A stretch of DNA of 63,588 nucleotides, filler included, from Reticulomyxa filosa (lineage: Eukaryota; Protista; Foraminifera): the NCBI GenBank assembly GCA_000512085.1. It is 16 parts of 16 records of this genome, joined end to end, with 100 filler letters (N's around TTAATTAATTAA, not from the genome) between each part and the next. Parts side by side here need not be neighbours in the genome. Positions count along the whole stretch, not along the records: positions 45,713 to 47,954 come from ASPP01014052.1; 15 more parts are not named here. One strand, written 5' to 3'. The notes beneath the pieces are model-generated. The model had not been told where the DNA came from, did not search any database, and worked only from the letters and a program-made list of their open reading frames with translations. Both the position numbers and the translations under genes were made by a program. Shown here piece after piece: positions 4,555-48,789 of this stretch. Every line of letters begins with the position of its first letter. The stretch's first letter is position 1.

Positions 4555-6445
4555 TTAACTCAGACCATATCCGTCACGTGACGAAGTTTTATGAAGATGT
4601 TTGGAATCACTCAACTCCTTGTAAGTGATCCCTACACCAGTAATGTTAATATCGGTGTTGTCCAAAGAAGTTTTCGAGCGAATTTTAGAATCGTTTGCGA
4701 TTGTTTTGTGGGCCGAGCTGGTCTCAGTTTGCTGAACATATTGCTACCATATTATCATAAAAAAAAAAATTTGGAGTCAATAGAATAAAAAGAAATATTT
4801 TACCCTCTCTACTTTTCAAAAGAAAAAAATTATATACACGTATACATTCTTAACTTCCAAAGCCTTCCATTTTTCCTCATTTTTTTTTCGCAACTCTTGG
4901 GTGTTGGAGGCAGTGGAAATAACTGGAGGATTAACATTCGTAGCCGTCGTAAATGCGGAGCCATCATGACGAAAGGGATGCTGGATTTGGATTTGATGAT
5001 GCAACTTATTGCTAATATCTTGAATTTGCGACTTTTCTTTGGTCAGCTGAGCAACAGTTTGCGTCAGCTCCAAAATCTTCGTTTGGTACTGTTTCTCCTT
5101 TGCCGCAGGTAACGCTTGGCTCATTTTCTTGTGCATCTCTTCCATGTTCTTCCGCATGTCCCGAGTGACTCCGCGAATGTTGTTATTTTCCGTTCGTAAG
5201 CTGCTATTCTCTTGTCGCAACAGCTCGTTCTCTGCTTCCAACTTGCCGCACCCACTCCGAAGTTTCATATTTTCTTCCATTTTATCTTTTCAATTTATCA
5301 TTACAAAAAAAAAAAAAAAAGGAAGACCTTCATTCAGAGTGTTTATGTACAAATAGATCAATATTTGTTTATACATACGTATACATACATATATACGTAT
5401 GTTGTATATAATTACTAAACTAATTTGATCTTTTTGCATTTGATGCATTTGCTGCGTCAACTGATCAATATCGGCTTGCATGTGAACAATCTTTTGTTTG
5501 TATTGCTCGACTTTTTGGAAGCGTGATTGCTGCTCGGTTTCGAATTGTTGACAAACTTGTTTGGACTCTAAGAGTTGCCGTTTCAAAGTTTCATTTTCGT
5601 TTTGCAAGTATTGGATTTGACTCGTGCAACGCGAAAGCTGCGTTTTATGTGCGTCCATTTCCTTCACCAGCATTTGTCTTTCATTCTTGTGGCTTTGCGA
5701 GTATTGCTGATATTGCTGCAGCGCCTTCTGTGCTCGCTCGATTTTGCAGTCAAAGCGTTGCTGACACGTCTCCGTCGTCTCTTTCAATCTGCCTATGCGC
5801 TCGTTCATTTTCTCCAATTTCGCTTGGCAGCTGCTCCTCTCCAGCTCCGTTTGAGCTTGGATTTTTTCGATTTGATACATTAACGTTTTCAATTCCATGT
5901 TGTGTTGTTGGGTTAGCGACTGATCGTTTGTTATTTGTTTTGTTTTTACATTTTTACATAAATGTATATTCATATATACACATATACACATATACATATA
6001 TTCATTTTTATGCTTTGTTAAACTTGCTCTGTTTGTAATTGTGACTTTACTAGACGTATCTTTTTTTCATAGTCACGTTTCATTTGTTCATTGTCCAATT
6101 GATATTTCTTTCATTATTTTATTTGTTTTCATTCATATAATGCATATGCATATATGTAAACAAACAAACGGAAAAAAAAAAAAAAAAAAAAGCGTTTGGA
6201 AATTACGCCTTGTTTTTTTTTTTTTTTTTTTTTTTGGAAACATTTTGATGTATTGCATTTTGCAAAAAAACCTGAATGGATGCATGGCATGTCTCCAATT
6301 GTTGTTCCAGCAGTGATATGTGTCGTCCGCATGATTGCACCTTCTCTTGTGACGAGTCCAGCTGACCTTTTAATACCCGGATTTGGTTTTCCTTTTCGTT
6401 TTTCGTTTCTGCGATCGCCTTCTCGTATTCATGGAGGATTGACAC
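4555..6445 (-). CDS. Multi-exon coiled-coil protein of unknown function (5' truncated)
   Basis: Q/E/K-rich heptad exons at about 6440-6240, 5930-5415, 5280-4850 and 4740-4555, separated by TA/poly-A microsatellite introns. End position approximate. Confidence 0.6.
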
Positions 6446-45562: not shown

Positions 45563-45761
45563 GCAATTAAAAAAAAAAAGATACGCTTTGTCTTTTTTCA
45601 GTATTTTTCCCCNNNNNNNNNNNNNNNNNNNNNNNNNNNNNNNNNNNNNNNNNNNNTTAATTAATTAANNNNNNNNNNNNNNNNNNNNNNNNNNNNNNNN
45701 NNNNNNNNNNNNCCCCCCCACACACACACACACAAAAGATAAAAAGAGGTAATGTACGAGA

Positions 45762-47174
45762 ATGAATGTATACGTAAAAATAGAACAATGCGCCAAACAA
45801 AAGTTCAAGACGTTGCTGGATGCACCGATGTCACGTTTGCCGCAATATTTGCAGCAAATGGCGAACGTATACAAAGAATGGAAGGAAGCAGGGAAGCAAG
45901 ACAACGAAGGTTCAAAGCAGTTGTGGCAAGCGATTGTGGACATCAAAAAAATGACGGATGAGATTTCAAACAAATGTCGAGACCAAAAAGCTCGTCAGTT
46001 GTTAGGACATTTACAAAAAGAGCTATTCAATGATAAGATTTCGCTGACAGCAGCGCATCGATTATGTGTGCGACATGGCGAACTGAAAATTGTGAAGAAC
46101 AAAGGATTGCATACGCAAATGTTTATTCTGTGTAATGATATTTTGGTGATTAGTACCGTTGGGTCGCGTTGGAAAAGTAGCGAATTGGTCGCTGTGTTTC
46201 CACTCATTGGATTACGTGTGCTGCATAATCCACTGGTCGATGAGTCGCTGCAAAGCGAAACCAAGTTCCGATTTGCCGTGGTTCCACAAAATAAAAATTT
46301 TGCACTGGCTGATAGCACCACAATGGGAAGTGTGATCATTGTGTGTGCACACGAGGCCGAATTGCAAGCGTGGGTCGATGAAATCGAACAAACAGTCGAC
46401 GAGGAAGAACATAATTTGCGTCCGTGTAATCCGGTGGATTTGGAAAAGCGATTGCGACGTGAACCTACTTGTCCAGAAGGCAGTGCGTCTACGGTTACTA
46501 TTACTGACCCTGTCAAAATTGAAGCGATTGAACAATGGAGAAAACATAAGGAAGAAAGTCGATTCAAAGTCAAACTCAAAACTAGAAATCAAATGCAATC
46601 AACTGTCATAATGTCTGCGGATTGTCATCATGTAAATGCGTCTTCGAATCCTCCTCTTGCATCTATACATCCACCTCCTCCTCCTCCTCCTCCTCCTCCT
46701 CCTCGTCCTCCTTCTTCCAATAAAAGACTCACCACGAATAGTGCCCCTTCACAATCTGTTGTTTCGAGTAAATCTCCAGATATTACTTCTCATTCTATGA
46801 CTGGTCTTGCTTCTCGTCCTCCTCCGCCTCCTCTACTGCACAGTCAACAAACTCAGGTTGTGGGACAATCATCTCCTACTGTTACGGTCACAACGGCCAG
46901 TTCGTTGTCGAGCTCAAGCATGAGTACAAATACAAGACCGAGTCAATCGCAATCCTCGACCAAAGCTACGCTTTTGGGACAAATTGCTGGGTTTCAGAAA
47001 GACTTGGCACTCAAAAAAGTTAATATCGAAGAGACGCAGGCCGCTGCTCGGTCCATTCATGATCCACAAGATGTTGCTTCCTTGCTGCAAACAACATTGG
47101 CAAACTATAGAATATATGTGCAAGGTGACTCTGACGATGAAGAGTCGGAGGATAATGACGAAGATTGGGAATAA
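45762..47174 (+). CDS. RhoGEF DH(C-terminal part)-PH, polyproline, WH2-C-A (VCA) protein (5' truncated)
   Basis: FKTLLDAPMSRLPQY (DH end); PH VRHGEL..MFILCNDILV..ELQAWVDEI; poly-Pro; WH2 KATLLGQIAGFQKDLALKKV; C DVASLLQTTLANYR; A GDSDDEESEDNDEDWE*. Confidence 0.85.
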   Translation: MNVYVKIEQCAKQKFKTLLDAPMSRLPQYLQQMANVYKEWKEAGKQDNEGSKQLWQAIVDIKKMTDEISNKCRDQKARQLLGHLQKELFNDKISLTAAHRLCVRHGELKIVKNKGLHTQMFILCNDILVISTVGSRWKSSELVAVFPLIGLRVLHNPLVDESLQSETKFRFAVVPQNKNFALADSTTMGSVIIVCAHEAELQAWVDEIEQTVDEEEHNLRPCNPVDLEKRLRREPTCPEGSASTVTITDPVKIEAIEQWRKHKEESRFKVKLKTRNQMQSTVIMSADCHHVNASSNPPLASIHPPPPPPPPPPPRPPSSNKRLTTNSAPSQSVVSSKSPDITSHSMTGLASRPPPPPLLHSQQTQVVGQSSPTVTVTTASSLSSSSMSTNTRPSQSQSSTKATLLGQIAGFQKDLALKKVNIEETQAAARSIHDPQDVASLLQTTLANYRIYVQGDSDDEESEDNDEDWE

Positions 47175-48789
47175 CGAAGAAACCTCTTCTAGTTAGCCCA
47201 ACTTATTTTGCTTTCTTTTCATAATAATTCCATTTTTGTTCTTTTGTTCCGATTCGATTCTGCTTTGATGAAAATTAGTATTTTTGTTTTTTAATTGTAT
47301 CAAGTTGCAAAAAAAAAAAAAAAAAGTAAGTTCAAGTTTATTATAAGTTTTACATTAGCTTGTTCGATTAAATGTATGATCTTAAACATTGTTGATCGAT
47401 CTATCAATGTTTTGATGCAATATAAAAGATAACTTATTTTCAAAGTGATGATTGCCACGTAAGTGTAAGTCACATTCTGTCAAAACTTTTCAGCTAAAAT
47501 TTGAATAAAAATTGAAATTGTAGAAAATTTTAAAAAAATATCAAAAATTAGAGAGAATTTAGATTAAAATTCAATACTTTGATAGCATTTTGTTCAAACT
47601 ACTTTTGCTGTAATTGCTGTGTGGCTGGTGTCATTATCTTGCTGAAATATATAATCTTCATTATCTTCTAAACAACAATTAATGCTTTTGAGCATTTCAT
47701 CACATAGAACTTCTTTGTAAATATATTCATTGCACATTAATTAATATTACATGCATAAACAGATCATAACACTACAAAGCAAGTCCACATGATTATGATT
47801 ATACAAACAATTTTTGATGTTTTTATGATTGACCGTCAGCTTCCATTTACGCACACATTCATGACTTAAAGTAAAGTTTTTTTCAACTTTGAGCAAACTC
47901 CAATCCTAATGCAACAGTTCAATAGCACGTTTTTTGTTAAAATTCTAAATCATTNNNNNNNNNNNNNNNNNNNNNNNNNNNNNNNNNNNNNNNNNNNNTT
48001 AATTAATTAANNNNNNNNNNNNNNNNNNNNNNNNNNNNNNNNNNNNNNNNNNNNTTTTGACATAATTGACGTTGTTTGTTTTTTCATTGACAGCCGCAAC
48101 CCGTCTGTTCAAAAAAAAATAAATGTATACGCCAAACTCACCAAAGAAAAATTTCGGGGTTGAAGCCACCCCGTGTTGCAAAAAAACGAAAGAGTTTGTA
48201 TCTTTTATTTTTTTATTTTTTTATTTTTATTAAATGTTTGTGTGTTTGTCAATAGGCATGCCCCCCACAAACAAAAAATTTTATTTGCTCACTACACTCG
48301 TAACAAAAGAAAAAAAATAGATTTTAGATTGTAATTGGAGCTGTCAGCTCCACATCAAATGTATTTTTTTGTTTGTTTTTTTAAATGAAAAAAATATTTC
48401 AATTTGTGACTGTGTTTATAGTGTTCAAAAGTCACAAACATATTGATATTTATTTTTTTATATTTTTATTTATGTTTGAGAGAAGGGTGATAGGGAACAT
48501 TTGGGATGAAAATAAAATAAAATGTAAAAAGGAATTGAAAAAAATGGATTGTAAAAAAAAAATGAAAAATGGAATAAATGGGAAAATAAAATTAGAAAAA
48601 TGGTTGTGAAAATTTTTATTTAAGAAATTGAAAGAAATGAAAAAAAGTTGAAAAAAAGAAAAATAAAATAAAAAAAAGATAACAATGAGAAAAAAAAGTA
48701 AAGAAAAAAGTCAAAAAAGACAAAAAAAAAAAAAAGGAAAAAAGAGAAAAAAAAGAGAAAAAAAAAAGTTGGAAAAAAATTGTATATGC

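Follow-up and report, generated by a model that had tools for sequence, protein, structure and literature searches.

The DNA analysed here is a 63,588-nucleotide stretch, filler included (hereafter the window), joined from 16 genome records of a foraminiferan, Reticulomyxa filosa (GCA_000512085.1), of which positions 45713–47954 correspond to contig ASPP01014052.1 of the whole-genome shotgun assembly. On its plus strand this contig carries the 3' part of a gene whose single frame joins the end of a DH (Dbl homology) domain, a PH domain and a proline-rich region to a VCA tail, that is, a WH2-like motif (V), an amphipathic connector helix (C) and an acidic end (A). Related proteins with the same order of parts occur in other Foraminifera and in Cercozoa. 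Judged from gene models and transcripts, the DH-PH-VCA fusion is real and the product of one gene in both groups, since 2.1 kb of a single foraminiferal metagenome scaffold (L004) contain the DH exon together with PH, linker and tail, and several of the full-length members are transcriptome-derived and hence single transcripts. Below we describe the gene piece and its tail, the family to which it belongs, the features of the DH domain and its predicted contact with the C helix, and the reading that these suggest, namely a nucleation-promoting factor (NPF) for the Arp2/3 complex that would be gated through its own DH domain.

The gene piece and its VCA tail

An uninterrupted plus-strand frame runs from an ATG at 45762 to a TAA at 47172–47174 (470 codons), with a G+C content of 44% compared to 27% in the 780 bases downstream. 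Along it the original prediction had read the C-terminus of a DH domain, a PH domain, poly-Pro, WH2, C and an acidic end DEDWE; this succession was confirmed, whereas the start has to be moved from 45762 to about 45784. The C-terminal third of the DH domain (45784..46046) aligns to positions 123–179 of the 180 in the Pfam RhoGEF profile (residues 8–68 of the frame, E 0.0054), and its score lies under the cut-off because the piece holds only this last third of the domain. Within it, profile alignments to PDB entries place the CR3 helix LLDAPMSRLPQYLQ at 45813–45872 and helix alpha6 (...AIVDIKKMTDEISNKCRD...) at 45921–46028. The PH domain (46074..46394; PF00169, residues 105–211, E 1.2e-5) scores 26.2 bits against a cut-off of 25.1, and the complete DH domain of full-length relatives reaches 78–91 bits with the RhoGEF profile (cut-off 27.6; E 1e-21 to 1e-25), so that Pfam matches both of the domains that had been proposed. 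The best PDB sequence matches of the DH-PH unit are FGD6 (6e-14), FARP1 (3e-13) and FARP2 (4e-12).

The PH domain is followed by a family-specific conserved linker of ~55 residues (TVDEEEHNLRPCNPVDLEKRLR...PEG...TITDP...WRK; 46392..46553) and by a Pro/Ser/Thr-rich region (46554..46961) taken to be disordered from its composition and from a predicted local distance difference test (pLDDT) value below 50 for its equivalent in the family member P0003. Translation reveals two poly-Pro tracts in this region, at 46668–46712 (with a run of 11 Pro) and at 46815–46838 (RPPPPPLL), and a Pro-rich region lies upstream of the VCA in all family members. The tail itself comprises a WH2-like (beta-thymosin-like) motif LLGQIAGFQKDLALKKV at 46968..47021, which fits a relaxed WH2 pattern, the amphipathic C helix DVASLLQTTLANYRIYV at 47070..47120, which fits a C pattern of the Kollmar type, and an acidic A region at 47121..47171, assigned from its Asp/Glu count and its terminal Trp and ending in ...DNDEDWE.

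Patterns were counted in 22 family tails. The relaxed form of the WH2 pattern was present in 19 of them (the window copy reads LLGQIA-x7-LKKV) and the strict form of the pattern of Kollmar et al. (PMC3298513) in one; the family motif belongs to the beta-thymosin type (I-x-x-F-x-K-x-x-LK). The C pattern V-x3-L-x3-L-x2-Y-R, with hydrophobic residues at i, i+4 and i+8 followed by Arg, occurred in 21/22 tails, residues L, L, T, L, N, Y, R and V of the helix being invariant or nearly so. At the acidic end, all 22 members have 6–12 Asp/Glu among the last 22 residues and a Trp in the last three. Poly-Pro and a V-C-A arrangement with terminal Trp are thus found where they had been claimed, and are conserved across Foraminifera and Cercozoa.

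We also searched 1.84 billion representative proteins with a profile made from 12 tails, which can find only tails similar to these. Among its 53 matches at E ≤1e-3 were, besides the DH-PH family, a WH1 protein (P0067, 1.6e-4), CRIB+SH3 proteins (P0058, 7e-6; P0062, 3.5e-5) and multi-WH2 proteins. For one of the CRIB+SH3 matches a WH1-like N-terminus is visible by eye only, and Pfam finds none there. These matches outside the family align over nearly the whole V-C-A length (profile positions 4–70 in the WH1 and CRIB+SH3 proteins), which supports homology of the rhizarian tail to the V-C-A ends of WASP-like WH1/CRIB proteins. All seven subunits of the Arp2/3 complex, on which such tails act, have been reported in foraminiferal transcriptomes (PMC5455982).

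As to the limits of the exon, an in-frame stop lies 12 bases, and the contig edge 49 bases, 5' of the ATG at 45762. Segment 45713..45783 (plus strand) appears to form an intron's 3' end and contains a (CA)n microsatellite (~45719–45734) and an AG acceptor (45782–45783). The acceptor is placed at 45783|45784 because the window copy and its R. filosa paralogue RFI_01661 (contig ASPP01001640.1) share the junction 'ag|AA', with (E)QC or (E)LC after it, because the homologous codon of scaffold L004 is the site of a 68-nt intron (KIN|ETC, P0003 residues 139/140), and because in three gene models from genomic DNA (P0001, P0002 and P0006) homology stops just upstream of the Glu of E-x-C. The true coding exon would therefore be about 45784–47174, a terminal exon in phase 1 that includes the stop codon and is supported by its intact frame and by homologues with E down to 1e-135. 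The first seven codons of the frame (MNVYVKI) are then probably intron and the ATG at 45762 probably not the real start, with the ~140 N-terminal residues of the DH domain, by this account, encoded in 5' exons past the contig edge.

Both the window contig and that of the paralogue (L003 1–85) end ~50 bases upstream of the open reading frame (ORF), inside the same intron, the former in C7(CA)n (45713–45735) and the latter in T15A25; in both R. filosa copies, simple repeats apparently interrupted the assembly at one and the same place in this intron. Downstream of the gene, on the minus strand at 47594–47896, are two short ORFs in one frame, interrupted by stops and containing ...YIFQQDNDTSHTA..., a segment that we take to resemble the second-Asp motif of Tc1/mariner transposases. 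Pfam gave no match for these ORFs, which probably are what is left of a decayed transposon, truncated by the contig end. No part of the piece resembled human DNA.

A protein family in Foraminifera and Cercozoa

Word and profile searches retrieved full-length relatives of 631–1225 residues, each with a complete DH domain, PH domain, linker, Pro-rich region and tail, and the tail is conserved in more than 20 relatives, well beyond what chance would give; a word search with the tail region alone added one protein. The architecture, for which a wider survey had been proposed, thus recurs in both groups. Foraminiferal members come from Ammonia sp. (MMETSP1384), Bolivina argentea, Nonionella stella (three paralogues) and Rosalina sp. 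(MMETSP0190), and R. filosa has two paralogues, the window copy and RFI_01661, the latter annotated as hypothetical or as a PH-domain protein only. Cercozoan members are P0066 from Mataza sp. D1, which has RhoGEF (1e-25), PH, two WH2 above cut-off, C and A, and P0060, a partial protein with PH, linker, two WH2 and C-A from a metagenome-assembled genome (MAG) of 'Cercozoa sp. M6MM'. In the cercozoan-type branch a WW domain stands between PH and the Pro-rich region, and the canonical WH2 motifs number two or three. Metagenomic variants include P0064 (806 aa; GYF + DH-PH + WW + VCA) and P0071 and P0078 (L002 5955–7859), both with DH-PH + WW + WH2 + CA. The gene model of P0078 is truncated, since tblastn finds DH-like exons directly upstream (L002 ~4964–5809) on the same 24-kb contig. 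From these sequences, the layout of the family is DH, PH, linker (or WW), Pro-rich region, one to three WH2, C helix and acidic tail with near-terminal Trp.

Within the foraminiferal family no block is more conserved than the linker, which accounts for the majority of the invariant columns in alignment A1. Its pattern, TVDEEEHNL[KR]PCNPVDLEKRLR...TS.EG...TITD...W[KR] (P0003 residues 340–405), also occurs in the MAG protein P0060 (NP[IV]DL-KR...TS-EG) and in P0059; the linker has no Pfam and no Atlas match. It is predicted by AlphaFold2 (AF2) with a pLDDT of 93–97 (in P0003, residues 330–405 are above 90). In the WW-containing cercozoan branch it is reduced to a short F-E-x-K-[IV]-R-K-K remnant. 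Compared to its R. filosa paralogue, the window copy has 58% amino-acid identity and an overall ratio of nonsynonymous to synonymous substitution rates (dN/dS) of 0.16, with 34% identity and a dN/dS of 0.45 in the Pro-rich spacer. For the C and A part the proportions of nonsynonymous and synonymous differences are 0.13 (pN) and 0.94 (pS), and on these figures the tail is under purifying selection.

Several variants depart from the common plan. Two Nonionella stella proteins, P0014 (1225 aa) and P0016 (843 aa), have Lys/Pro-rich N-terminal extensions of 280–600 residues before the DH domain; in P0016, moreover, WH2 is degenerate and the acidic tail is doubled, with two Trp. Foraminifera have the VCA in a second fusion as well, P0040/P0081 (Bolivina argentea and Nonionella stella; 517 aa), which combines a signal-peptide-like N-terminus, a Kelch_1 beta-propeller (1.6e-10), a single transmembrane-like hydrophobic stretch and, on the cytoplasmic side, a WH2-C-A tail like that of the DH-PH family (tail-profile E 1.4e-12). 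By its domain order it would be a receptor-like transmembrane nucleation-promoting factor, and its existence suggests that VCA shuffling is unusually active in this group. Another protein, P0068 (543 aa; tail-profile E 1.9e-4), combines a signal-peptide-like start with three identical WH2 repeats (ANLL[AT]SIESFDAS.LKTV) and a terminal WH2-C-acidic-Trp, and looks like a secreted VCA mimic of the intracellular-bacterial kind.

The DH domain, the C helix and a predicted switch

Solved complexes of DH domains with a GTPase have the CR3 Gln and alpha6 Asn in contact with the switch regions of the GTPase, and mutants at these sites are dead as guanine nucleotide exchange factors (GEFs), as with PVQR to AAAA in ECT2, N810A in Dbs and N1406A/D1407A in Trio, and likewise in Vav1 and P-Rex1. 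We examined the hallmarks of the rhizarian DH domain by alignment to solved DH domains and by motif extraction from 15 members. The CR1 Glu (S-E-x-x-Y-V), equivalent to Dbs E639 and Vav1 E201, is kept in all nine members in which the CR1 motif was matched; it is seen in the relatives and falls outside the window piece. The CR3 motif reads P-x-[GASHNE]-R-x-P-Q-Y, and its Gln is absent in 12 of the 13 members with the motif, P0059 alone having it; the window copy has P-M-S-R-L-P-Q-Y compared to the canonical P-x-Q-R-x-x-K/R-Y. The divergence of DAPMSRL from IxPVQRI to which the original prediction had drawn attention therefore holds, the Gln being replaced. At the alpha6 position of Dbs N810/Vav1 N371, in the register given by the ECT2 alignment, rotaliids have Ala, and Reticulomyxa and Cercozoa have Ser or Thr (13/13 members), and under neither of two possible registers (see below) is Asn found at this site in any of the 13. 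A DH domain that binds a GTPase rather than catalysing exchange, as had been suggested, would fit these losses of the CR3 Gln and the alpha6 Asn.

The structure of P0003 was predicted with AF2 from a 29-sequence family alignment. Its DH-PH unit has a pLDDT above 90 and its C helix (residues 599–620) one of 81–83, while WH2, like the Pro-rich region, stays below 50; in the Mataza protein P0066, similarly, the C helix reaches 88 between flanks below 50. The P0003 model superposes on the P-Rex1 DH-PH with Z 23.8 and a root-mean-square deviation of 4.5 Å over 329 residues (Foldseek TM-score to DH-PH tandems up to 0.76), and its best fold matches include P-Rex1, intersectin (Z 23.4), collybistin, Vav1, Asef and Ephexin4. 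In a complex prediction, P0003 residues 1–420 and the protein's own tail (564–631) scored 0.77 compared to 0.30 for the best of three controls, a mark attained by 51/78 solved complexes but only 2/108 mismatched pairs (39/65 solved and 2/126 unrelated pairs for eukaryotes). The runs share at least 54% of contacts, with a partner pLDDT of at least 60. In the predicted complex, DH residues 152–173 (CR3 helix) and 183–208 (alpha6) contact tail residues 42–54 (LLQSTLANYRQFVM), with the tail Tyr (residue 49) central against T197, D198, I200 and A201, and the surface contacted is where the GTPase sits in DH complexes of solved structure. VIA alignments to the DH-only chain 8zlf_A and to Ephexin4 DH-PH-SH3 extend as far as model residues 607–623, compatible with packing of the C helix on the DH domain in the AF2 model. 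That the C helix is predicted to lie in the groove with which a DH domain binds its GTPase suggests autoinhibition.

We consider it probable, taking these results together, that the gene encodes a member of a Rhizaria-wide class of DH-PH-VCA class I NPFs in which the C helix is held in the protein's own DH groove until a GTPase binds. The WH2 motif would recruit actin monomers and the Pro-rich region supply profilin-actin, C and A would together activate the Arp2/3 complex, as expected of a class I NPF, and the PH domain would position the protein on membranes. At rest, the C helix with the invariant Tyr-Arg of its NYR would sit in the groove formed by the CR3 helix and alpha6, which in the prediction spans the usual catalytic Asn site, here Ala, Ser or Thr. 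A Rho-family GTPase would compete for this groove and release the C helix, leaving the VCA free for Arp2/3, and the DH domain would thereby act as a GTPase sensor in the role that CRIB/GBD has in WASP. This last and most specific proposal, that a degenerate DH domain has replaced CRIB/GBD as sensor, with the NYR of the C helix plugging its groove and docking of a Rho-family GTPase triggering branched-actin nucleation, we put forward only tentatively; were it true, it would be the first case of an exchange-factor fold serving as an effector-type switch for Arp2/3. In Foraminifera and Cercozoa the family may also serve as a major NPF of the pseudopods.

Several points weigh against the reading of a gated class I NPF. 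For the window copy, CR1 and CR2 lie outside the contig, and comparison is confined to the final third of its DH domain. The alpha6 comparison depends on the register, since the ECT2 alignment leads to Ala201 of P0003 and the ARHGEF16 alignment, shifted by three residues, to the invariant Asp198, although spacing, heptad pattern and the ECT2 alignment favour the Ala/Ser register. The complex test is uncalibrated for peptides and disordered chains, and its docking score may echo solved autoinhibited structures with a helix in the DH groove, such as that of Vav1. As for the tail, the WH2 motif originally claimed, LLGQI..LKKV, is in place and fits the relaxed pattern, but Pfam WH2 has no match in the window copy; in foraminiferal tails it matches 5/9, weakly and below the curated cut-off (best E 0.0021), and it is above cut-off in Mataza P0066 (2e-12) and in P0078 (1.5e-18), with lower-scoring matches in other relatives. 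The C motif described by Kollmar et al. (PMC3298513) consists of three large hydrophobic residues at i, i+4 and i+8 followed by an Arg/Lys doublet, whereas the family has one invariant Arg and no doublet. Finally, a PDB search with the tail profile returned no solved WASP/WAVE VCA, its hits being a weak cordon-bleu WH2 (E 1.7) and a chance-level fumarate reductase.

An unlikely alternative, which was the model of the original prediction, is a short circuit in which a fully active GEF loads a Rac/Cdc42-like GTPase, which goes on to drive other effectors, while a constitutively available VCA on the same polypeptide itself nucleates branched actin at that place on the membrane, in a feed-forward arrangement with no intramolecular gating. 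The complete DH fold, the CR1 Glu conserved in full-length relatives, the closeness of the fold to active DH-PH tandems (P-Rex1, intersectin and collybistin) and the conserved VCA features are all as expected of such a protein. However, of the two residues that contact the GTPase, the CR3 Gln is replaced in nearly all and the alpha6 Asn in all of the members examined, the complex prediction puts the C helix on this same surface, and an inactive resting state is almost universal among known class I NPFs.

The predicted docking could also be read the other way round, with the tail mainly regulating the exchange factor and not activating Arp2/3: the C helix would be inhibitory in the manner of Vav, WH2 a mere tether for actin monomers or filaments, and the acidic Trp incidental or meant for another partner. 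This fits the predicted insertion of the NYR helix into the DH groove (0.77 versus 0.30), the weakness of the foraminiferal WH2 matches, and the fact that plugs of the DH groove, whether helix or SH3, are common; the best structural matches include such autoinhibited proteins, namely Vav1, Asef, collybistin and Ephexin4. We nevertheless think it quite improbable, as the full V, C and A arrangement with Trp within the last three residues is kept in 22/22 tails over the distance between Foraminifera and Cercozoa, and the same type of tail is found on WH1/CRIB proteins and on the Kelch transmembrane proteins, which have no DH domain. Because the same tail ends proteins without DH, its conserved function is not specific to DH. 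An artefact, be it an assembly chimera, a wrongly called ORF or a pseudogene in decay, might be suspected from a contig of only 2.2 kb that is cut inside the gene, with a decayed transposase-like remnant 400 bases downstream, but is hardly credible, and pseudogene and chimera were rejected on account of the low dN/dS (0.16, over 463 intact codons) and of the presence of the architecture in independent transcriptomes and genomic scaffolds from at least eight organisms.

Comparison with known systems

Class I NPFs have a common VCA output and N-terminal regulatory modules that are specific to each subfamily, and to our knowledge every well-studied one receives its Rho-GTPase input indirectly or via CRIB/GBD. 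A VCA welded to a Dbl-type DH-PH would mean a new regulatory logic in Arp2/3 control. It occurs in a group, the Rhizaria, that forms the largest and most dynamic pseudopodial networks known, the basis of foraminiferal chamber formation and biomineralisation, and we know of almost nothing reported on the actin regulators of these networks. If the C helix does lie in the DH groove, an enzyme fold would have been repurposed as an allosteric GTPase sensor, and the use of a DH groove as a lock for a VCA would be mechanistically new.

The DH-PH-VCA architecture is absent from the catalogue of WASP-family proteins (PMC3298513), in keeping with the original supposition that it had not been catalogued there, and from that of Dbl-type RhoGEFs (PMC5499878), a survey that included R. 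filosa. No DH-PH-VCA protein is described in a study of the rhizarian cytoskeleton (PMC5455982) or in a recent Filoreta preprint, and a full-text search of the open-access literature found no description of one. The N-termini that define the named WASP-family groups (WH1, SCAR homology, WAHD1, WMD/JMY, IMD or GBD alone) differ from that of the rhizarian proteins, and Pfam WH1, PBD and IMD have no match in the window frame or in the full-length relatives. Since its N-terminus is DH-PH, the family falls outside WASP, WAVE, WASH, WHAMM/JMY, WAML and WAWH.

With WASP and N-WASP the rhizarian proteins share the Pro-rich region, a motif of the WH2 kind, the amphipathic C helix and an acidic tail with near-terminal Trp, as well as a C helix sequestered by an N-terminal GTPase-responsive module, which is known for WASP/N-WASP and predicted here. 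They differ in having DH-PH in place of WH1 and CRIB/GBD, in the predicted docking site, which is the DH groove, and in a C motif with a single Arg and an invariant Asn-Tyr-Arg. Lineage-specific fusions have already been given subfamily names, namely WAML (IMD + VCA, in Entamoeba) and WAWH (GBD + VCA without WH1) (PMC3298513). These provide a precedent for a cassette of proline-rich domain and VCA being shuffled onto membrane or GTPase modules in amoeboid protists, although their N-termini are IMD/WAID or GBD and that of the rhizarian family is DH-PH.

Among exchange factors, intersectin-1L is a DH-PH factor for Cdc42 that is physically and functionally coupled to N-WASP. The rhizarian protein looks like a natural, fused 'Rosetta-stone' version of this GEF-NPF partnership, but in one polypeptide and with a DH domain that lacks the Gln and Asn used by intersectin on Cdc42. 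FGD/frabin and FARP RhoGEFs, which give the best PDB sequence matches of the DH-PH unit, offer another parallel, in that FGD4/frabin combines actin binding with DH-PH; its actin-binding region, however, is N-terminal and bundles filaments, without WH2-C-A or a link to Arp2/3. The predicted resting state resembles that of autoinhibited Dbl-family GEFs. In Asef, collybistin, Ephexin4 and Vav1 an intramolecular element occupies the GTPase-binding surface of the DH domain, and in Vav1 (Ac helix, Tyr174 in the DH groove; 3ky9) a helix Tyr is central in the groove, as is predicted for the Tyr of NYR. Unlike in those GEFs, the rhizarian plug lies at the C-terminal end of the protein and consists of the very helix with which a VCA binds Arp2/3. 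Because the plug is the C helix of the VCA, its release would activate a second output and not only the GEF.

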